Below, piece after piece: positions 5,664 through 63,689 of a stretch of 64,000 nucleotides of DNA (within the stretch, counting starts at the first letter, position 1; each line of letters opens with the position of its first letter). Source of the DNA: Macrostomum lignano (lineage: Eukaryota). The position numbers were made by a program, and so were the translations under genes. The notes below the pieces were generated by a model that made no database searches, was not told the DNA's origin, and worked only from the letters and a program-made list of their open reading frames with translations. The stretch spans positions 62,001 to 126,000 of the forward strand of contig NIVC01002967.1 in NCBI GenBank assembly GCA_002269645.1. The letters are read 5' to 3'.

Positions 5664-5869
5664 CTCGGACAGTTCGACATCAAAGATTTAATTTAATTTT
5701 TCTAATTTGCTTACAAGTTCTCCACTCTGGGCAACTCTGCGTGACAAGTTTTGTTCTAATTTCTGTTTTAAAAGAAAAAAATACATTAGAAAAAGAATTC
5801 CAGCAACTTTTCGTTCTCAAAGAAAAGAATGGAAAGAAAAAACTACGAACCGGTAAATCGAACTTGACC

Positions 5870-7520
5870 CTCGTGTCTACTGCTTCGTGACAGTCTATTT
5901 TTAAGAAACTTCTGAGATTCGAACAGTAAAAAAGTATGGCACATCGAATTTCAGCACGTCAACAAGATATGTAAATTTGAATTGTGTAGTAAATTCGAGC
6001 ATGCTAAACTGTAGAATTTCACTACGCATTGAAATTTCCACACGTCCACAAGATATGTAAATTACACAGTACCGAAATTTGAACGTCGCAAAATGTCGAA
6101 TTTCACTACGCATTGAAATTTCCACACGTCCACAACATATGTAAATTAGTCAGTACCAAAATTCAAACGTTGCAAAATATTGAACTTCACTACGCATTGA
6201 ATTTAGCTACTGGGAATAATTTCCTATGGAAATAAGTTACCCACCCCGACTGCTTGGCGGCCAATGTGCAGTTGCGAAAAACTGACGCGGATTGGTAAGT
6301 CGAACTCAGATTTTGGCGAAGTCTGTGAATTCAAGAAAATTAAAATTACCCGGCGACTAACTCAATCGACTGGATATCAGTCCAGCAGGCTCTACTTTGA
6401 GTGGCGCCGGTCAAAGTACTTCCCAGAGGTCTCACGGACGAAGAAGAGTATTTTGGTACCTTCCGAATTTCATACACATCTTATGTAGCAAACTCTATGG
6501 GTAGTAAAATGATTTTGCTACGTATGTGAAATAAATACACACCCAGTGTACCCAACTCTTAGCTAGGAAATTCAATTTTGGCCTAAAAACTCTTCAGGCG
6601 CCGAAAAGGTCTCCATCGTAATCAGCGCATTGAATTTAGCTATTGTGACTAATTTCCTATGGAAATAAGTTACCCACCCCGACTGCCTGGCGGCCAATGT
6701 GCAGTTGTGAAAAACTGACGCGGATCTGCAAGTCAAACTCGAATTTTGGCAAAGTCTGTGAATTCAAGAAAATTAAAATTGCCCGGCGACTAGCTCAATC
6801 GACTGGATATCAGCCCAGCAGGCGCTGCTTCGACTGGCCCCGCTTAAAGTACTTCCCTGAGGTCTCAGGGACGAAATAGGATATTTTGCTACGCTTCAGA
6901 ATTTCGTACACATCTTGTGTAGCAACGTGTATGGTAGTAAAATGATTTTACTATGTATCTGAAATAAATACACACCCAGTGTACCCAATTCTTAGGTAGG
7001 AAATTCATTTTTGGTCTACACACAAATTCAGACGCCGAAAAGGTCTGCATCGTAAGCAGCGCATTGAATTTAGCTAGTGTGAATAAAAAATACATAAAAT
7101 TCCAACTTGACTCTCGTGTCTACTGCTTCCTGATGCTTTTTTTAAGAAAGTTCTGCGATTGCAACATTAAGAAAGTACTGCACATCGAATTTCAGCACTT
7201 CAACAAGATATGTAGATTAGACTTGTGTAGTAAATTCGAGCATCGTAAATTGTAGAATTTCACAACGTTTTGAAATCATCCTACGTCAAGCAGGGACGTA
7301 AGGTAGAGGGTAGCAAAATATTGAATTTAACTACGCATAAAAACATTCATACGTAAAAGACATCGTCAAAAGAAGGGTAGCAAAAAATAAACGTAGTAAA
7401 TTGCATAATTTTGCTACGCAACAAGATTTTCATACGTAAAAGACATCGTCAAAAGAAGGGTAGCAAAAAATAAACGTAGTAAATTGTATAATTTACTACG
7501 CATCAAGATTTTCGTACGTC
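5870..7520. repeat. Complex repeat block: two ~433-bp direct copies (6193-6625, 6626-7059), flanking ~150-bp direct repeats (~5870-6025, ~7110-7265), and ~83-bp subrepeats
   Basis: CGCATTGAATTTAGCTA at 6193, 6626 and 7060; CTCGTGTCTACTGCTTC at ~5870 and ~7113; CATACGTAAAAGACATCGTCAAAAGAAGGG duplicated at ~7348 and ~7431. Confidence 0.85.
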
Positions 7521-7529
7521 AAATGGTAT

Positions 7530-9100
7530 TTAAAGAAGAGAGTAGCAAAATTCGCGAAAAGAAAAATATTGAAAATACAGCGACCAGTTCATCCCAATTC
7601 TGCTACTGTTAAATCCACGGAAACGGTTGGCATTGGAAACGATAAACAAACGCATTTCCCGAATATTATTTTCCCCTATTAGGGCCCTTCTTATCCCAAA
7701 CAGAATCCCAAACAGATAGACACTTGTTTTCTGGATCGGGATGAATTTGGTTATGCAGATTAACAATGAAGCTATAGTCGTAATCACTCACTCCAAGTAC
7801 ATCCGAGTAATTATATTCCACCGATTTAGTAACGTAATCGTCGTATCTATACTCGCGAAACTCACCTGTAGCGAGATCATTTACTCCATCGTTAAACCCT
7901 AGCAAATTCCATTTCATATCGAATTCAATTTCATTGTTAGTAAACCTCTCTTTGAACAAAGTAGTTACCTGTTTGAGCTTGTTGGCTCCTTGTATTGAAT
8001 TTATATTCTTCATTGTACTCTGTAGTTTCTTTTCAAGTGCTTTTAACTTCTCTTTATCATCAGCCGCCTTCTCAATTGCAATTTCGAGTCTAGTCTTTCG
8101 GTGGTTTAACTCACTGCTAACAAGGTCTGATATTTTAAGAAATATGTCATTTATACTACTTAGTTCTCTCCACTCATCATCATCAAAATAGTAAATACCA
8201 TCGCTATTGTAAATTATATTATTTTTCTTATATTCATAAACAAAGTTGGTTATGTTAACGTCAGTGAAATTATCATCAAGATACTCAATTCTACCATAAT
8301 AATCATATTTGCTTTTCCATTCCTTATATTTGTTATAGTTTTCTTCACTTGCCCATTTCTTTAGTGTACCGATAGTAAGTCTGTCCTGTGCATCAGCAGA
8401 GCTGGCACTGGTGCTATTCCACAGCTTCTCACATGCCTCGGAATCGAACCTATTATAATTTGCTTTTGACCAATTAGTGAATACTTTGTACATTTCATCA
8501 CCACTGTCTATGTCGCGGAGTATAAGTGCTACCTTGTACCAAGAACCATAGTCTTGGTTTTTGTGTTGTATTATACTTAACAACTTTGAAGCTCCTTCAC
8601 AAGTGGGGGGTGGAACGGTGCTTTTTAGTGCCTGTTTATCGGGTTCTTGGTTTTCTTTTTTATCCTGTGGCTTAATTAATCTATTTATCTCATCAAGAAT
8701 TACATCTGTCCCTCGCACTTTGTACGTTTGTATTCCTTCATTTCACCATCCACATAATAGAAACCTGGTGGAGCAAATACTAAAGCCGGAATATCAAAAC
8801 CCACACTTTGTTGAATCGTTACTTTTAATCCATCTACCTTGTTAAAGTAAAAGTGATGACCCTTGTTTGTCTGAACAATCCAATCACAATGAGTCATACA
8901 CAGTTCAATCAACTCAGGGCATAGGTCAGCATTATCAATATCGATTACGGTTATATTTGAGATTTTCGTATCTATCCAAATCATGTTGTCTGCCTCTGGT
9001 CGAAATGGTGGGGAGGTTGAATTCCTATCTGCTTTGGTTGGCATTCCTGACGGTATTTTTTTCTTTGTTTTACTATTCCATGTTATACTGCAACTTCCGA
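7530..9100 (-). pseudogene. Viral-type primase-helicase remnant (AEP/Prim-Pol + PriCT-2 + D5_N), frameshifted and truncated before the SF3 ATPase
   Basis: ORF 8700..9044 has AEP motifs ITVIDID and QTNKGHHFYF. After a frameshift at ~8720, ORF 7666..8718 has PriCT-2-like YGSWYKVALIL..FTNWSK..CEKLWNS..TIGTLKKWA and D5_N-like NLLGFNDGVNDLATGEFR..DDYVTKS. A third frame gives ALIGENN, but no Walker A follows. Intronless. Confidence 0.8.
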
Positions 9101-10160
9101 ATCTAAAATTAAGTTCTCTATAGAGATTAATTAGTTAATCGTAAGATTTTGTTTGTTTTAAATTTGTCAATCTTGGTGGTGGGGCATCATGGTTTTGAAG
9201 CGGATCCTGTACGATCACAGGAGAGACACTTGAATCATTCTGATTTTTTCTTTCCATTTTATTAAAAATAAATTTAACAATATATTGTAATTTATCGGTT
9301 TCAATGTACTTCTCACGGGTTATGGGGAGTTTAAAAATGTTCAGTTTCAGCATGACGAAAAATTCATCATTCCTTATGTGCTGTCTCGAAATCAATGCCC
9401 ATTTATCAACATGTGCAAGATATACTCTGAATGAATACAATTATGGGGGGCATTTACAATCGGTGTGTTTTAATATTTCTACTTTATATTCATCGTAAGC
9501 TTTATCAATTTCTTCAATTAGTCGAGCCTTTCGAGTGGGTGTTTTATTTGAGAGAAACTTACAATAGAATCATAGTATTTTTGTGGCAGAGCATTTCGAA
9601 CATTTGGGTTATTAGCTTCCAATTTTTCTAAGAAAAATTAGCAGTTACAATCTGGTTTTTGAATTCTGGTTTCGCTGATTGAGAGATTGAGACTGACTCA
9701 CACCACACTCCGCTGCCACTCTCCGAGACTCTCACAGGAGTTCAGTGTTTTTTCATCTTCATCAAACCCCCTTATTCAACCCATAAAAGACACTAGGGGC
9801 ACCCCTCATGCTAGCTGTCTTTCACAACAATTTATAGGCTGATGCAGGACTGGCACACTCACCAACTCTCAAACGTTATGCTAGTTATTTGTGTGTGTTT
9901 ATTAAAAGATACTCTCTATCTCAACTCGCACAACGAACGCGTGAGTAATTGTTAGAGATTCTTTGTTGAAACAAATACACTCACACACATATCAAGTTTA
10001 ACGCATGGCTCACACCCACACACTTTTGCTAGTTGTAACCTGTTATCGGCTGACTGCGACCCTCCCCTCCATCGCTATATTAGTTTTATTTAGCTTAGCA
10101 AGCAAGAGCAAGAGAAAATTTACTTTAGGTCTAGAATTCTATCTATACAACATATTTCAA

Positions 10161-10455
10161 ATGGCTTCTTCCAGCGATAGAAAGCTTCCATCTAAGATAG
10201 TTTCCACGATTAAGAGTATTAGCTCAAAAGACCAATCAAGTTCAGCAGTTGCAGTTAGTCGCTTGTCTAGCGAGGAGCAGAACTCATTACTGGAAAAACT
10301 GCGAAAGATTGAATGTGAGTCCTTCAAGAAGGATAAGAAGGAAGAGAAGAGCAAAGAGAGCGATTCTAAATCTATTAGAGAAAGCCGATTTATTGGACGC
10401 CTTATCGAAAAAATGAGAGGAGTGACAAACGAAGTAACAACTATCAAGACTCGGT
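10161..10455 (+). CDS. First coding exon of an orphan gene, now fused in frame to the LINE ORF
   Basis: ATG at 10161 (MASSSDRKLPSK...EVTTIKTR), not homologous to retroelement domains; ends at the left target-site duplication. Confidence 0.6.
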
Positions 10456-13400
10456 GTCTTGTTGCCTCGGTTTATATCCCAGGGGACAGAGACCCTGCTC
10501 CTGAGAGTTTACTGCGCCTCGCGCAGTACTGCGAGTCCCAGAACGCTGAGCTGTGCTTAGGGGGCGACCTTAACGCGCACCACAAGCACTGGGGCAGCAA
10601 AGATACCAACACTAGAGGAGAGGAGCTTCTGGCCCTCATCTTTAACACAAACCTCATGCTCTGCAACCGCGGCAGCACTCCTACCTTTAATAATGGCAGA
10701 TGGACCGAGGTCCTCGACGCCACACTCGTTACCCCAAGACTCTTTGACAGAGTTGAGGAGTGGAGAGTCTGGTCTGAGGAGCCCTCCCGGTCTGACCACT
10801 GCTTTATCGCCTTTAACATCGCGGACACTAAAACCCAGTCTCCGATCACTTGGAGGCGCAATATCCGCAACACTGATTGGGCGGCCTACAAGGCTGCCCT
10901 TGATCTGCACCTGCAGGAACTCACGGACTTACGTCCGATTGAGACCTGCGAGGATGTGGATCATATGGCTGAGACGCTGACAGGTTGCATTATTGCAGCC
11001 TACGTAGCGGCTTGTCCTGCTCGCGCCTACAAAGGCAAGACCTCGGCGCCGTGGTGGAACCCGGAACTGGGGAAACTCAGGCGGAAGGCCAAAAGCCTTC
11101 ATCGCCGTGCCATGAAGACCGGAAACCCGGAGGACATGGAGCTTTTCCGGCAAGCCTCCCGCAACTTCAAATCTGAAGTGCGCAAGGCCAAGGAATGTAA
11201 GTGGCGCCAATTCTGCAATGAATTAGATCAAGACAGACCTACTTCTAGGCTTGTCAAGGCCCTTACAATGGACAAAATGTCCAAATTAGCCATGATCAAA
11301 AAAGATGATGGCTCTCTTACTAAAGACCCTGAAGAAGTGCTACAGCATATGCTCAGCACATTCTTCCCGAGGGTACCTACTGCTAGACCGGAGCCCAACC
11401 ATTCGATGGATGGAGCCACCCTAGCGGCGGGCATTGTCACTGAAGACCTAATCGCTCGTGCGGTCAAAACCTTCAAACCCTTCAAATCTCCTGGACCTGA
11501 TGGTATCTACCCTGTTCTCCTTCGTGAAGCAGCCAAGATACCCTCGTTCCTGAGACTCACCCGCAATCTTATGCGGGCCTCTATCCAGCTGGGATACGTT
11601 CCCAAATGCTGGACTGAAGCTCGGGTAGTCTTTATTCCCAAACCTGGGAAGGGTGACTACCAAAGCGTCAAGGCCTTCCGGCCTATTAGCTTAACGTCAG
11701 CAATGCTTAAGCTCACTGAGAGGCTTATTCTCTGGCGGCTGCTGTCCTGCGAGCTGACAGCGATGCCCCTCAGCAATAATCAGCACGCCTTCCATACCGG
11801 GAGGTCGACTGACAGCGCCCTGCATGCGATTGTCGAGAAGATTGAAAGGGCGGTACTGGGTGACGGTTACGCTCTGGCTCTCTTTCTTGACATTGTTGGC
11901 GCCTTCGACAACGTTATCTTTGAAGCGTTTCAGAGGGCCCTTCAAAATCGCAAAGCTCATGCTACCCTCATACGGTGGATCATGTACATGATCTCCAACC
12001 GTACGGTCACTGCCCAACTTCTTGGGCAAACTGCCTCCACCAGAGTCTGTAAGGGTGGACCCCAAGGCGGAGTCCTCACCCCGACGCTCTGGAACCTGGT
12101 CATGGACGCTCTTTTGAGTGACTCCCGACCCGACCCCGTCTTCAAAGTCGGGTATGCTGATGACGTCACGGCCATTGTGGCAGGACCGTCTCCCAGCACG
12201 CTCAGGGATCTGATGCAGAGCTTTATCCGCAAAGCAGAATCCTGGGCCAATGACAATGGTCTGGAACTCTCTGAGCCCAAAACCGTTGCCATTATGTTTA
12301 CCAGCAGACTACGCTGGAACATACGTCCTCTGCAGCTCTACGGCAGAGATATTGCCTTCGCGCACCAGACCAGATGCCTCGGGGTCATACTTGACCACCG
12401 GCTCAACTGGTCCTCCCACGTGAAAGCAAAAGCCAAGCGTGCCTCAGCCATCCTGGCCCAGCTCCGACGAGCACTTGGCACTTCTTGGGGTCTATCCCCA
12501 AAGCGGCTTTGGTGGATCTATACTTCCGTAGTTAGACCTGCCATTACGTACGCCTCTGATGTCTGGATTAGCGCTACCCAGGTAAAAAGCCATGCAGACC
12601 TGCTCAACACGATCCAAGGCAGAGCGTGTAGGCTCATCTGCAACGCCACCAGGTCCACGCCCTTTGCTGGCATGGGGGCCTTCCTTAATATTCCGCCTCT
12701 TGACCTCTTCATCAGGGGTGAGGCGGCTAGAACGACGCGGCGTCTAATTGATGCCGGCGTCAAATTCATTTACATGAGAGCACCTGCTAAGCGGAACCTT
12801 GTCCCGCATAGCGATCTGTGCCTCAACTTTCTCAACGAGTGTCAGGCCAATCGCGTCTTCACCGATGGCATTGCCTCAACGCTCAACCTGAGACAGCGCT
12901 ACTCCGTAGCTATCGACTCGCGCGATAACATCAATGACCAATGGAACCCTGGTGAGCTTCATTGCTACACCGACGGTTCTAAGCAGTCAGCCAACACCGG
13001 CTTTGGTGTTGGAATCTTTCTGAACGGGAGGGTCATCGCTACCCACGCTCAATACACTGGGGTCAACTCCAGTGTTTTCCAAAATGAAGTTCTGGCCATC
13101 AGCTCCTGCACTGCAGAGCTTCTCGCCACTGGCGTTACTGGTAAGAACATCATTTTCCATTCGGACAGCCTAGCTGCCTTGCACGCCATCAGTGGCTGCA
13201 GCACCAACTCTGCTACAGTCCTCGACTGTATCAAACTTCTCAACGTGTTGGGTTCCGCCAACAAAATTACCCTTAAGTGGGTTTCGGGGCATGTGGGGAT
13301 CCGAGGAAATGAGTTGGCTGACACCCTTGCAAAAGTTGGTGCCTCCGGCTCCTCTCTCGGCCCCGAACCTCTTGTCCCGATTCCTGGCTGTGTCATCGAC

Positions 13401-13973
13401 TCGCGCATCAAAGCGTGGATCAGGACTCAGCAGACTTGGGCGAACCGCACGAACTGCAGACAATCCAGAGGCGCTGTCCCTCAGCCCTCTCACCAGCTCC
13501 GGAAGCTCCTCTTGCGCCTCTCGCGCAGAGACATCCGGGCTGCCACCATGACCCTCTCTGGTCACGGCTGCTTCTCCAGGCACCAGTACCTGCAGGGCAA
13601 CGCCACCAACGCCACCTGTAGTTTCTGCAACTCAGGTGACGAAACCGCTGAGCATTTTGTCAGCATCTGTCCCGCCTTCACGCGGGCCAGACTCACTTAC
13701 CTCGGGCCACACACATCTATTACTGAAGCGTGCAAACCCGAAAACTTTAATCAGCTCATGCGCTACCTTCGGGCCACCCGCAGGGCTGAACTCTCCTTTC
13801 CAGAGAGCACCATAGCTGCTGGCGACACTGGGGGACCTCCCTGGGCGGCGCCAACCCTCCGTCCATAGCGACGCGTCGGCCGTTCAGGGACTAGCGGAAT
13901 GGGCGCCCGCGCCTTCCCGCTGTGTCCCCTCCGGGACAGCCCTGCAGCTAAGTCAAGTCAATCAAGACTCGGT
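10443..13973 (+). mobile_element. 5'-truncated non-LTR retrotransposon (I/R1/Loa-like) with partial APE endonuclease, RT, RNase H and C-terminal CCHC; 13-bp TSD
   Basis: Uninterrupted ORF to 13868 with GGDLNAHHKHWGS, SDH, PWWN, KSPGPDG, FRPISL, FLDIVGAFD, PQGGVLTP, YADD, YTDGSK, HSDS, WVSGHVGIRGNELAD and C-x2-C..ETAEHF..C. ATCAAGACTCGGT at 10443-10455 and 13961-13973; AAGTC-repeat 3' tail. Confidence 0.97.
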
Positions 13974-14047
13974 AAGTTTCAGTTTCATTCTCCATAATTT
14001 CATTGAATAAAAGCAAATATCATAACTTGAGTCTATTTTCATTATAG

Positions 14048-14521
14048 GTTCTACAACGCAAAGGTGTGCACATCTATCATTGGCGATGATGAGACTCGCA
14101 TGATCCAACGGTTCAATCAACTGGAGGGTTTCATCGCCGACCTTGAAGTGCTGGGTTGTATTGCCAGTAAGAAGAAGCAGAAGTAATTGCTGCGTTGCAA
14201 GAAAAACTCGGACTGAGCATTGAAGGAGTTGCGAGAAAGCTAGATATAGATGTGAAGTTTGCCCAGCGACTATTTACATTCTACAAGCTAACAACAAAGT
14301 ACCCGAGTCTGGTAATTTCTGGATATTGCTTTGAGACCCTTCTGACGTTCAAGAAGGCAATTGAACAAAGAGCATCAGAAGATGAGAATTTCGCATGCCG
14401 CCTCGAACTCGACATCGTACTGCACTTTGAAGGAGAGGATGACAGCATGCTTGATGAAGAAGAGAACGACACGATTGAAGCAGCCACTAGCGAAATGGGA
14501 AGCGCTTCTATTGATGAATAA
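14048..14521 (+). pseudogene. Downstream exon of the LINE-interrupted orphan gene (frameshift at ~14169-14183)
   Basis: Donor G|GTAAGT at 13972 and acceptor TTATAG|G at 14047 join in phase 2 (IKTR-FYNAKVC...). Frame A stops at 14184, and frame B continues as ORF 14195..14521. Confidence 0.55.
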
Positions 14522-17499: not shown

Positions 17500-19948
17500 T
17501 TAACAGCATATCGCGAAAACCCATATGGTCAGCTTGGCTGACCATGGCTGTAAGTAGTCTATATGAAGTATAATAACGAGAAAACATGCATTCAAGCATG
17601 TCAAAAACTCAAAAATATCGTCAAAAATATCAAAAACATGAAAAAATTTTCACAAAAAACATGAATTACTAAAATTCCTTTTCTCACTCTGCTAAACGGG
17701 TGAAAGAGCATAGCTCGAAGCTGTCTGCTCAATCGCACCTGAATAGTAGGGTGCTGAACTAGTAAATAACGTTCTGTTTTCGACTTTTTGAAACTTTTTC
17801 AAGTTCTTAGTAGTTAAAACTTTGAAATGGTCTCAATATTTTGAATTTCTAGCTTCCAGATGTAGCATTGCTTTGAGTTCTTTTCTAATAAATTTTGCAA
17901 AAGATCCAGTAAATGTAGCTTTACTTCTGTTGCTATTACACTACCTAACTTTTATGCAATGTGAGGCAAGACAATAACAGGTAGTCGGCAGGAGTAAAAC
18001 GAACAACTCTCCTCTCAGCCTACGAGTGCCAGGCTCGAAAGCAGTCAGGGATGCACAAGCCGGGCTGACCCGGGCACTGCTGACAGACGAAGACGGTACG
18101 TTTGGTGATGCCATTGCGATAGCAGACTCTGCAGCGACGTGTTACTGGGCAAGTGAACAGCATCGGCAACAGGACGCGATGGGTGGACGCACCGTCTTTT
18201 TCCAGGCCCTGAGCTGTCTATCAGGGCAACGATCAGTTGTTCCATGAACTTCAGAAAAGTCAGTGAGCCGCCGGAGTGCCGGAACAAAATCCAGGCATTT
18301 TGCGACAGCTGCAATAGGAAATGAATTCCGAGCTTCTGGTGCCAGCGGTACATCTTTCTGCTTGGGTGGTAGGGCTGCAGCGCAGAGTCAAGGCGGTCGA
18401 CACCACCCATGGACTTTGAGTAGTCCGTCACAGTCACCGGCTTTCGAACAACCTCCATTTGTCCACCTCGTCTGTACCGTTGTCGCGCAGTGCTCTGGGC
18501 CGTACCGAAGGTGTCAAGCAGGTAGACTGTCTTAATACCGCTTGCTTTTCTGTCTGTCAGCTTCACTGCCAAAACATCACCGCTTCGCATGTAGCAGTGG
18601 GATGGAGGCACTGCTGGCATCTGCCGGAGCTCGACTGGAATGCCGCGGTCACAGCGAACGGTGCCTGTTAGTAAGGTACTGTGAGCTAGTAGAAACTCGG
18701 CCAGTCGTCGGGAGGAGAAATAACTGCCAACAAACACCCTGTAGCCAAGATTTAGCAGGTCCTTCGAAGCTCCACCACTATTCGCTCGCTGATGGACAGG
18801 TTGTAGTCGACGAATTCGCTGCCAAACTTGCTGTTTTCCTCAGCTGTCGAATGAACGAGGACGCTCCATAAGTAACCGGTCTTGGAGTCACAAAGACAAT
18901 AGGCCTTAATTCCATATCTAGCCCGCTTGCTGGGAATATACTGTTTGAACGCTAGTCGTCCTTTGTGCTGAACAAGCTCCTCGTCAACAGCGATGTCCCT
19001 GTCAGGCTGAAAATTCTGCTGACAAACTTCCTTTACTGAGTTCAAGAACGGGCGGATTTTGCGAAGCGGATCGTCATTGTCACCAACGCGACAGTCGTAG
19101 AACCTCAGAAAAGATAAGATTTGTTGGAACCGGTTTCGAGACAGGCAGTTTTCACTCAGGAACAACTGGTTGTCATAAAACTTTCCAGTGGCCCAGTAGT
19201 TTTTTATCTCTGGCTTGCGCACGATTCCCATGTAAAATATTATTGCGATGGTCTTTTTTATCTCATCATCTGCACAGTCTCTCCAATCGGTCAATCTCGG
19301 TGGCAGCTGCTGGTCATCCTCTTCGTTCTCAAAGATTCGCAGCTCCTCCCATGCGCGAGCATTGGTGAATTCTTTCAAATGACTAATAATGTCCTTCGTG
19401 AATAAGTTGAAAAAGAGTAACGGCTCATTTGCTGGTGCTTGAACACCAGGATTCATACCGTGGACTCCGAGAAACTCGGGAAGCTGCCCAGCTCTGTCAT
19501 CTTCTCCGTCGTTGACAATTGTCCATTCGTTTTCCTCATCCTTCATCTCCAAGGTTGGCTCCTCAATTACTTCAAAAACTGAGTCCTGATCTGACTCAGT
19601 CGATGAGCTGTTGGACTCGTCGCTTGTAAGAAGTTGATGAAGACTCATTATTACTTATCCGTCGAAATAGCAAATTATATGACAATTCTTCTTAAAATGA
19701 AGAGGCAAACAATCTAGATTGAATGTAAAGGAGAAAAATCTTTCTAGGGATAGTGACTTAGTAGGTACGAGGAAGGAAGGGCAGAAGCAGTCCACAGTGA
19801 TAGGTTCTATGGCTGAAACCCCAAAGCAGGTCACAGAGTGTTCCAAACACACTCTCTCAAGTAACGGGTTTTGGCGATGTTAAAGCAGCACTATAATTTT
19901 ACATAGCAGTAGTCTATGGTCAGCCTGACCATACGGGTTTTCGCTTAA
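17500..19948 (-). mobile_element. piggyBac-superfamily DNA transposon (defective)
   Basis: Imperfect inverted ends GCGAAAACCC(A/G)TATGGTCAG..GCTGACCAT at 17513-17545 and 19916-19944, with TTAA at 17500-17503 and 19945-19948, bracketing the transposase. Confidence 0.8.
18020..19648 (-). pseudogene. PGBD4-like piggyBac transposase, two frameshifts (~18770, ~18145), second catalytic Asp lost
   Basis: DDE_Tnp_1_7 motifs LSRNRFQQILSFLRF, VDEELVQHKGR..KQYIPSKRARYGIK and YSKSMGGVD. The DNxF/Y motif reads VGSYFSS. A third frame gives the Cys-rich tail RRCRVCYRNG..VFVCQQCPGQPGLCIPDCFRAWHS-stop. Confidence 0.92.
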
Positions 19949-36595: not shown

Positions 36596-56982
<20,387 letters not shown>

Positions 56983-60230: not shown

Positions 60231-62136
60231 TTTCTTTAAGAACTAACTGACTTGCTAACTTACTAACACTAAGCACGCACTGTTTTACGTTGCCTAGCAA
60301 ATTTATACATGTACTGTACGGGGCTGTCAATGATTTCCTCCATTTTTGACTATTTAAATCTAACTGCCGGAAAAAATATGATGCTAATTTTTTTCATATT
60401 GTAATAAAGTAATTACTAACTACGCGAAACATATTACTTATCAGAGTGTACCGATAGAACTTTGTACCAAATATGTATTTTTTCAGTTTAAAGTTTGCAC
60501 TGGACAGTTTTTAAATTTAAGAAGAGGACAGTCAGATAAGTTAGAAGAGAATAAAGTTGCAAGTTCATGAATTTATAAGCTCAAAAACTTTACTGCTATC
60601 CACAGTTTAAAAACTGAGGCCCCTAAAAAACCGAGATAAAAATTATAAAATAAAGTATGTTGGATCTGAAATTAAATATTAAATAAAAGCAACTGTGTGC
60701 TGCACTGCTATTAACTAGCAAACAAGCTTAACCACAGATAGCAAAACACTAAAAGTTATAGTGCAGGGTATACACTCCTACCTTAAATTTACATCTAGAA
60801 ACGATAAGCTCGAGAGACGTCACTGAAGCAGGCGGATATAACTAACTAGAACACTTGGCTATTGTCAAAACGACCGAGGCAACGAATTTGATTGTGCGCT
60901 CCTCCTGCACTGTAGAGTGCTGTCAGTAACGCCCACGTAACACCAAGTAAAGAATAAATGCACGCACATTTTTCTTGGAATAGCCCAATAAGCACATAAA
61001 ATCCGTCCCTTTGCACCAAGCCTGCCAGAGTATAAAACTTTGCTTGGATAATTTAAGCTAAAGAACGTTTACATTTTACGCTCGTACCCTTGCACACTAC
61101 TGCTGCTTTTATCTACGAAATCTTGCCAAGCAGCAGGCTGAAGCAGCGCAATTAATACGTACAGCATAGAACGGCTCTTTTTTACAAGTTTCGCAAGGTA
61201 TAGTTTACTGTTTCTCTTCTGTGACTGCTTTGTAAAAACTCAAATATAGAATAGGCTCGGATAGAAAGCTGAGCATAGGATTCTAAATGAAATTGAGTTA
61301 CTTTGATTTATTTAATTTATTTATTAAATATTTCATAAGCTATCCTGTTATCACTAGCAACGATAAACTTCCTCAAAATTAATTAAAGAATAGCTCTCCT
61401 TTGCCTAAATCTACTATAAACTGTCAATATAATTAATTATACAATAAGTGTTAAATCCTTAATCATTCAGTTTGTCACAATTGAAAGATGTCGGCCATCG
61501 TAGCATTTGAATTTACGCCCATAATAAGCACTATGGCGCAGTTTTAAGCTGTGGTTTACCTATTTTCTTTTAGAATTCTTATACTTTTGTGACATTGTCA
61601 CCAATACTACCACTTGCAACACTGCTAAATTTGGTAAATAATTTCCATGGCGTCTTTGAGAAGTCTTGATGGGTCGCTAAACCATGTGATAGGGTCTTCT
61701 GAACAAATTAATAGCGCAGTTTAGAGAATATGCAGCTTTGGCCGTCACTTTGATTCAATGATTTTCTGTAGGAATTTAGTTAAAAGTTAAAAAAACTTTA
61801 TTTGCGTGACTGTTTCCTTTGCGCTGCAGTAGCTCGTAATGGCCGCCACGGATTATGTTAGGCTAAAATAATGACATTATGTACAATGACGTTGCATGAT
61901 ATGCATGATATACATACACGTGATTCATGTGCATTCGATTGCAAGTCTAAGTCTTCCGAAACCTAAAATAGGCATAAGTGCTAGTATTTTCGACACATAA
62001 AACAGTTTAAAACTATTCTTACGATGATCAACCAACGTTTCAAACATTTTTTTATTTCAGAACCGAGCGAGCGGCTGACTTTTTCTCATAACTCAATTCT
62101 TAAAGTGCACGAAAGAGTTGTAGCTGTCATCTGTAT

Positions 62137-63689
62137 ATGATGCAACAGTCTGACGGCAGTTTTTCCTGTTCTGACATTACAGAGATATCAAATATTCATC
62201 CCATCCAGCATTCCCACGGTATATTTCGCTGCGAAGTGCTTCGAGAAGCCACAAACGGTGGCAGTCATTCTGCAATGAAGTCCTTTGCTAAGAGCAGAAA
62301 AATGACGAAAGAGATCTTGCAGAACTGCAAAGAAACAGAGATGCATTTAGGCGCGAGTACGAACTTCTAGCAAGCTTCAAGGATGCGAACTCCAACACGG
62401 CGCATCCCCACATTGTTTCGGTCACTGCCTACTTTGAGGTGTATCTCGATTACGGACCGTTGTTTTTGATGGAGCTTGCCGAATGCAGCCTGTTTGACGT
62501 CCTGAAAGACGAAGTAGCCTATCAAACTGATGATGCCGAAGGCAAATACTCTTTTAGCCACTGCATCAGCTTTCTGTTTCAAATTTCTACAGCACTAAAA
62601 TACTTGCACGGAGGAATTCGCTTCAACAATGAGGTAAAGCCGGTCATTCACAGAGACCTGAAAAGTTGCAATGTATTGCTGTTTAACCAGGGCAGACTAT
62701 GCAAGCTTTGCGACTTTGACATCAGCAGACCGGTAGAAAATATCATGACTGGAGGCGTCGGAACTCCCGGCTGGAGAGCACCGGAGCTGATGCCGCACAG
62801 TTCCGACAGACGGCTGGCATACACCGTCGCAGCCGACTGCTTCTCGTTCGGTGCACTCTGTCTGGAAGCGCTGTTCCGCGAAATACCAGATAAAATAGGA
62901 AAACCTTATTGTCCTACAGATTATCAAAGTGCTGACAGTATTATCTACTTCTGCGAGCGTACAAGATTGGTGGCACGTCTGAATGACTCGAAGTTCAAAG
63001 ATTCTGCCGCCTTCGGCCTCCAAATGCCGGTAATCAAAGATTTGCTATCGGGTTTGCTTGACGATGAGCCCGATAAGAGAATCACAGCCAGTCAAGCATT
63101 TGAAACTCTGAGGAGTCTCGCTCCTCAAAGCGTCTCTCCTCTATACGGACCAGAGATTCCCCACACCTCAATCGGAGTTGGACAACGCGAGGTTAGTGAA
63201 CCCATCGTTCTGGAGTCCACCGTTGAACATCCGCGCATCAGCACCAGTGAACCGAACGAGTTCGTTTCCGTATTCTACACAGTTAAGCAAGCCAATTCAA
63301 ATGCTGAATTTAACGATAATGACAAGAAAAGAATTCAAAAAGTGATGGAAGTGATGATCGAGACACTGAACACTCTTGCTAGCCCAACTGAAACGCCTTG
63401 CACCGCAAACTTCTGCATCTGCTTAACCACAGCCGATCTAGCCAATTTGATTCTAGAAATCAAAATAAAACAAAGCAACAAAAACGAAGTATCGGTGCTT
63501 GAGTGGTGTCAGAATAACGAGAAAAAATGTTCTGAGCAGTTCAGTAAATTTTTTTCAGAAGATCCAATCGTTAAGCTGCAAGATCTGGTATTCGGCATGA
63601 GGATTCCAATCAGTTTATGCCCGACGCCGATGTCGAAAGAGAAGACACGCCTGCGCCGTCGATTACGTCAAGAGCTTGCGCATTTCTAA
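62137..63689 (+). CDS. Divergent TAK1/MAP3K7-like (TKL) protein kinase; frameshift at ~62338-62340; possibly a pseudogene
   Basis: SAMK (subdomain II) in ORF 62137..62370. In the shifted frame: AFRREYELL, HPHIV, YSFSHCISFLFQ..YLHG, VIHRDLKSCN, LCDFD, GTPGWRAPE, ADCFSFG and DEPDKR. Confidence 0.8.

Follow-up and report, generated by a model that had tools for sequence, protein, structure and literature searches.

Does an open reading frame (ORF) of 1235 aa that joins the first exon of a flatworm gene to a reverse transcriptase (RT) represent the birth of a new gene, or is it an accident of transposition? The frame is found in Macrostomum lignano, on contig NIVC01002967.1 of the GenBank assembly GCA_002269645.1, of which we analyzed positions 62,001 to 126,000 of the forward strand (these 64,000 nucleotides are referred to as the window, and all coordinates below count from its first letter). 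The original prediction, made from the sequence alone, was that a 5'-truncated long interspersed nuclear element (LINE) has inserted on a splice donor of a resident gene and has thereby produced a candidate newborn, endonuclease-less RT fusion gene. Our analysis bears out the structural part in every detail and fails to support the functional step: the locus is very probably a recent, incidental insertion of a 5'-truncated LINE on the splice donor of a small lineage-specific gene, dead on arrival as a transposon and with a non-functional fusion as its by-product (Table 1).

The fused frame (10161-13868) comprises 98 resident residues, followed by the C-terminal half of an endonuclease, an RT, an RNase H domain and a zinc knuckle, and it is open from the proposed ATG to the TAG codon of the LINE. 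The mechanically derived ORF opens at the ATG at 10005; homologues of the resident protein start with MASSSDRK at 10161.

The insert is an APE-type LINE, with a YADD-containing RT, a target-site duplication (TSD) and the family-typical 3' end; of the APE domain only a remnant is left, which suffices as a mark of descent. In the Pfam analysis of the 1235-aa ORF, Exo_endo_phos matched only with positions 124-225 of the 225 in its profile (Exo_endo_phos_2 was matched as well), and the best PDB match for the endonuclease, the TRAS1 structure 1wdu, was covered only in residues 147-242 of a 245-residue chain. The RT region matched the structures of R2 and LINE-1 ORF2p. The RNase H domain retains D938, E976, D1002 and D1054, which are invariant in the alignment with the relatives. 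The 3' end has no poly(A) tail. The half APE domain devoid of N-terminal catalytic motifs, and the RT, RNase H and CCHC modules behind it, were thus correctly recognized by the original prediction, according to both the Pfam matches and the motifs.

A motif alignment of the window ORF with seven LINE relatives of 1208-1321 aa locates the missing part. All seven relatives exhibit the series CLQINLHH ... LVQEPW ... PRAC ... DLC upstream of a common ASVY.PGD block, while the window ORF has an unrelated K/E/S-rich sequence there, with none of the APE motifs. The relatives of 1208-1235 aa align from their own residue ~100-105 to residue ~100 of the query, and in a full-length relative from a Logan contig (L001) an ORF1 of 525 aa immediately precedes an ORF2 of 1232 aa. 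Compared with these relatives, the insert is missing the 5' untranslated region (UTR), ORF1 and ~104 codons of ORF2, and what is left of ORF2 runs uninterrupted to the element's own stop codon; by analogy with L001, the absent part would amount to roughly 2.4 kb. With the equivalents of QINLHH and QEPW replaced by resident exon 1, and with an ORF1 seen only in L001, this copy is predicted not to be competent for retrotransposition.

LINE pieces in M. lignano gene models from UniProt (P0005, P0007, P0018 and P0038) match segments of the ORF at 93-100% identity, which identifies the LINE as an apparently multi-copy family of this species; no further copy was found in the window by self-BLAST and tblastn. 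The absence of stops from 1,137 LINE codons, the identical copies of the TSD and the 93-100% identity matches suggest that the insert is young. As a separate observation, the models P0007, P0018 and P0038 join the same pieces of the LINE, corresponding to ORF residues 253-346, 637-712 and 846-993, the first of which ends at a donor-like AAT/GTAAGT at window position 11197 (here and below, a slash marks a splice junction). These joins stem either from cryptic splicing that recurs in transcripts of the LINE or from a gene-prediction artefact made more than once.

The resident gene is a member of a small and apparently lineage-restricted family. A spliced model of its first two exons (E1+E2, 143 aa) gave no match in a word-indexed search, and the family surfaced only after the addition of E3, a third open frame without an ATG that follows the stop of exon 2. 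The E1+E2+E3 query aligned over 100% of its length, at 63% identity, with P0053 (M. lignano A0A1I8FXA3, 254 aa); a second paralogue, P0054, came out of the same search. An exhaustive HMMER search with P0053 among 1.84 billion proteins yielded 12 representative clusters; the members (A0A1I8FXA3, A0A1I8IZ36, A0A1I8FQV7 and relatives) are ~240-255 aa long, and the family has no significant Pfam domain, with only weak hints of a helix-turn-helix. The resident copy has in common with the family the start, the position of an intron after ...KTR and a conserved C-terminal block, and differs from A0A1I8FXA3-like members in being interrupted by the LINE and in a 1-nt deletion in exon 2. One member, A0A1I8IZ36 (P0055, 239 aa), is named "Endonuclease-reverse transcriptase" by its source; it contains no such Pfam domain, and the name looks misleading.

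The original prediction took the duplicated sequence to be the end of an exon plus the GT of its donor, and the homologues agree. Across the junction the protein alignment is continuous (TIKTR/FYNAK-VCT in the window, TIKTRFDNAKEVCT in P0053 and VIQTRFNNARELCT in P0054), with the pattern ...IKTR/F.NAK..., and the ORFs of two homologues on genomic contigs, P0061 and P0062, stop exactly at ...KTR. In a further genomic homologue, L002, the exon ends with ...GTT AAG ACG CG/GTAAGC (AAGACGCG/GTAAGC) and is followed by an intron of ~91 nt, which closes with TTTTAG/A TTT TAC GAC GCC AAA; its codon position and phase are identical to those of the intron in the window. The pre-insertion gene consisted of exon 1, a 76-nt intron and exon 2, with the LINE now between the first two. 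The ~98 resident residues belong to a separate, non-LINE family, and the downstream exon of that family's gene stands directly after the insertion. An intronless gene of 98 aa ending at CGG-TAA was considered and ruled out: the homologues read through this point, and L002 has an intron there.

The repeat ATCAAGACTCGGT (13 bp) occurs in two identical copies, at 10443 and 13961, and nowhere else in the window, in agreement with the original prediction. The left copy is followed by GTCTTG... (donor context TCG/GTGTCT) and the right one by AAGT, which gives the context TCG/GTAAGT and thus runs into GTAAGT as was claimed. Taken alone, a 13-bp repeat proves little, as a first-order Markov simulation predicts ~9 chance pairs of directly repeated 13-mers spaced by 1-7 kb per window (the actual count is raised by satellites). 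The TSD is convincing because both copies match, to the base, three independent boundaries. The first is compositional: the GC content changes from 40% in exon 1 to 55% in the insert and 25% in the intron, with the step exactly at 10455/10456. The second is given by homology, as nearly all of ~40 LINE ORF2 relatives reported by BLASTP align with the ORF from query residues 98-100 (codon 99 of the fused frame spans 10455-10457). The third is the 3' block CCCTGCAGCTAAGTCAA, shared with the 57%-identical relative L001; four bases separate its end at 13956 from the right repeat. It may also be noted, from a comparison of 10432-10455 with 13950-13973, that the LINE tail AAGTCAAGTCA resembles the target to the left of the TSD, AAGTAACAACT, and that TCAAG is common to this tail and the beginning of the TSD, which may reflect priming microhomology in this single case.

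These boundaries bear on two other accounts of the junction. The 98 aa could be native to the LINE family as an unusual N-terminus of ORF2, with the 13-bp repeat a coincidence, a possibility foreseen in the original prediction and one for which the open frame alone speaks. In this place, however, all relatives have the N-terminal half of APE, including CLQINLHH and LVQEPW, and the family that the 98 aa do match is not a LINE family and has its second exon directly after the insertion; together with the intron position conserved in L002 and the GC step, this leaves the idea with practically no chance of being correct. Alternatively, a chimeric long read or a mis-join could have placed the LINE inside the gene in the assembly, as may happen in a genome in which repeats make up over half of the sequence and assembly is difficult (PMC5730564). 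A mis-join, however, would not be expected to give a perfect 13-bp duplication that coincides with the conserved 3' end on one side and with the start of homology on the other, and we regard an artefact of this kind as extremely unlikely. Nothing in our observations contradicts the structural account, i.e. a genuine insertion into the donor.

We propose that reverse transcription of an RNase H-bearing LINE took place at a staggered break in the resident gene, which took in the final 11 nt of exon 1 together with the GT that opens intron 1. Early termination of reverse transcription or joining at the 5' side, in keeping with the standard anatomy of target-primed reverse transcription by LINEs, may have led to the loss of the 5'UTR, of ORF1 and of the ~104 codons with which ORF2 begins; the 13-bp duplication of the target would be the result of repair. 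By chance (insertion on the sense strand, with one frame in three suitable), the remainder of ORF2 continues the frame of exon 1. The resulting LINE copy lacks a promoter of its own as well as ORF1, and without the active site of its endonuclease it is unable to nick DNA; it is therefore dead on arrival as a transposon. For the resident gene, the event is a splice-site insertion: the strong donor now lies 3.5 kb further downstream, and the GT that remains at the old exon end is weak.

The consequences for splicing depend on which donor is used. The displaced donor, now 3,518 nt further downstream, matches CAG/GTAAGT in 7 of 9 positions, and the residual GT on the left in 4 of 9. If the displaced donor were used, exon 1 would become 3.8 kb long, and the stop codon, 103 nt before the exon junction, would be expected to render the transcript prone to nonsense-mediated decay (NMD). 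A stop this far upstream of an exon junction is a usual target of NMD. If instead the residual GT at 10454 were used, or if the spliceosome generally removed the LINE within a 3.6-kb intron, the mRNA would be normal, the insertion would be tolerated and the fused ORF would never be translated. The TSD includes the GT of the donor, so that a GT still stands at the original exon end, and a splice from 10453 to 14048 would restore the junction known from the homologues. Against this stand the low score of the left site as compared with the displaced one and the presence of stronger donor-like sites within the LINE (at 11197, 12582 and 13141, all of which would join exon 2 out of frame), and we consider such tolerated splicing unlikely. 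An insertion that disrupts the donor is preferred.

Exon 2 of the resident copy carries a lesion of its own. Relative to P0053, P0054 and L002, 1 nt is deleted at 14175/14176, leading to a stop at 14184-14186 after 143 codons. In tblastn searches with P0053 and P0054 the frame switches between 14177 and 14171, which leaves no space for an intron, and the DNA alignment with L002 requires a single 1-nt gap (AAGAAG-AAGCAGAAG in the window versus AGCAAGCAAGCGGAG in L002). From 14171 onward, the homologous frame meets no stop before 14519-14521. That a tiny intron might separate E2 from E3 was considered and rejected, as the frames overlap without spare bases and L002 is continuous in this place. 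The frameshift cuts off the best-conserved part of the protein, its C-terminal half (VKF.QRLFTF ... SGY..ETLLTFKK.IE ... DENF). The resident copy would accordingly be either a pseudogene already or the victim of an indel error in the assembly; unless the latter is true, the gene copy is probably decaying. Assemblies of M. lignano are PacBio-based, and the genome contains large duplicated blocks (PMC5730564).

What, then, of the newborn gene? According to this interpretation the resident promoter drives a translated, 1235-aa resident::RT-RNase H protein without endonuclease activity that is retained for its function. The fused frame is open throughout its 1235 codons, with the RT, RNase H and CCHC motifs intact; the start codon and the N-terminus belong to a real gene family, and a TATA-like TATATTA, which may represent a promoter element, is situated ~80 nt upstream of the ATG. 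However, an in-frame fusion is expected in one third of sense insertions, an open remainder of ORF2 is expected of any recent copy, the stop would be NMD-prone if the displaced donor is used, and exon 2 of the resident copy is frameshifted. Nor was any protein with both a resident and a LINE part found among 5.8 billion proteins, and when the chimeric ORF (read from either ATG), the ORF 14195-14521, P0053 and P0054 were looked up as exact sequences, no contig and hence no transcript or empty allele came up, in collections that seem not to include contigs or transcripts of this genome. We find it highly doubtful that the endonuclease-less protein is actually made from the resident promoter, and very unlikely that a functional new gene has arisen; this part of the original prediction is left unsupported.

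Two considerations weigh against the incidental, non-functional insertion that we favor. The absence of function is argued from an absence of evidence, in databases evidently without this genome's own sequences. Moreover, the frameshift in exon 2 could be an error of long-read assembly; if so, the LINE may have hit a resident gene that was still active.

Gene-disrupting insertions of 5'-truncated LINEs form a well-known class, of which this locus is another case. Insertions of this type that affect exons or splice sites have been catalogued for human and mouse L1 in two reviews (PMC4859970, PMC6466679). These L1 insertions resemble the one in the window in the 5' truncation, the intact 3' end, the short TSD, the sense orientation within a gene and the disturbance of a splice site. 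They differ from it in that here the locus is from a flatworm, the LINE belongs to another group, with RNase H, and lacks a poly(A) tail, the break lies inside the donor with duplication of the GT, and the reading frame of the upstream exon carries on into the truncated ORF2. Only the last two details, the donor-straddling break with its duplicated GT and the agreement of frames, are unusual.

As to the type of the element, its domain content suggests a provisional place near the RNase H-bearing I/R1/LOA/Tad1/Ingi/Nimb assemblage of non-LTR (long terminal repeat) retrotransposons. The Drosophila I factor and Bombyx TRAS1 are examples of this assemblage. The order of domains (APE, RT, RNase H and a C-terminal CCHC) is the same as in this group, TRAS1 ORF2p is the PDB entry that the endonuclease matches best, and the relative L001 has two ORFs. 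On the other hand, no zinc knuckles were seen on reading ORF1 of L001, and in place of poly(A) or (TAA)n the element ends with CCCTGCAGCTAAGTCAA(GTCA).

Endonuclease-independent retrotransposition is known for LINE-1, and domesticated RTs are known as well, such as telomerase and the rvt genes. The predicted fusion protein, if made, would likewise be an RT without a working endonuclease; unlike those systems, which have demonstrated activity or long conservation, it is a single copy known from sequence. If the fusion proved to be real, it would be a natural and very young case of an RT captured under host transcriptional control, and its product could use its own or other RNAs as templates for reverse transcription where DNA is already broken, or supply raw material for domestication. 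As matters stand, the locus adds another dead-on-arrival LINE copy to a genome rich in repeats and leaves existing knowledge unchanged. It provides a clean, base-resolved example of a LINE insertion that remodels a gene at an exon-intron boundary, and it could serve as a natural test case, in a flatworm amenable to transgenesis, for the choice of splice sites, the NMD of long chimeric exons and the fate of an endonuclease-less RT.

Table 1. Annotated features of the interrupted gene and of the inserted LINE (window coordinates).
Feature	Position	Strand	Evidence or remark
Resident exon 1, 97 codons + 2 nt, MASSSDRK...TIKT(R)	10161-10453	+	66% identity to P0053 aa 1-97
Left target-site duplication, ATCAAGACTCGGT	10443-10455	+	ends with a duplicate of the donor GT (10454-10455)
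5'-truncated non-LTR retrotransposon (LINE), 3,505 bp, 55% GC	10456-13960	+	homology, Pfam, TSD
C-terminal half of APE endonuclease, GGDLNAHH and SDH present	10458-10808	+	Pfam, 1wdu match, alignment
Reverse transcriptase domain; YADD at 12153-12164 (aa 665-668)	11634-12386	+	RVT_1, E 4.9e-27, aa 492-742
RNase H domain: TDGS, NEVLAI, HSDS, NELAD	12957-13343	+	Pfam RNase_H, E 1.3e-9, aa 933-1061
C-terminal CX2CX8HX4C zinc knuckle	13617-13670	+	C1153, C1156, H1165 and C1170 invariant in alignment
LINE ORF2 stop TAG, also end of the chimeric ORF	13866-13868	+	103 nt upstream of the displaced donor
LINE 3'UTR: conserved blocks TAGCGGAATGGGCG and CCCTGCAGCTAAGTCAA (13940-13956), then GTCA	13869-13960	+	alignment with the 3' end of L001
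Right target-site duplication, ATCAAGACTCGGT	13961-13973	+	together with 13974-13977 restores the strong donor TCG/GTAAGT
Resident intron 1, 76 nt, 25% GC, acceptor ...TTTTCATTATAG/G	13972-14047	+	homologues continuous; L002 intron in the same place
Resident exon 2	14048-14521	+	frameshifted; AATAAA at 14517, at the stop

The window as a whole is a patchwork of satellite DNA, tandem repeats and pieces of transposons, in which a formin gene and a kinase ORF are also found. A D5-type primase fragment on the minus strand (7666-9044; Prim-Pol (weak), PriCT_2 and D5_N, in two overlapping ORFs) is situated 1.1 kb upstream of the resident gene and oriented divergently from it; it lacks the helicase half and adjoins tandem repeats. 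Primases of this type are usual in large DNA viruses and mobile elements; no convincing terminal repeats were found that would make the resident gene and the primase fragment one element. An AT-rich satellite with a 202-bp unit (8.6 copies) and separate tandem arrays of 84-bp and 433-bp units occupy 1-1736 and 5855-7550, and a piggyBac-type transposase (DDE_Tnp_1_7), broken into two ORFs, is encoded on the minus strand at 18045-19648.

Further downstream, the exons of a FHOD-like formin (FH2, FH3) lie on the minus strand at 39433-51764 amid tandem repeats of 4 to 45 bp, and an ORF with a protein kinase domain is found on the plus strand at 62439-63689. Between 40524 and 41264, a 21-bp unit is tandemly repeated 35 times, and the ORF that it contains matches Pfam LbR_Ice_bind (E 2e-18); this match is probably driven by the repeat and does not indicate a real antifreeze-like protein. 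Finally, the segment 27001-28000 has a GC skew of -0.84 and an AT skew of -0.69, which points to a C/T-rich simple-sequence tract.

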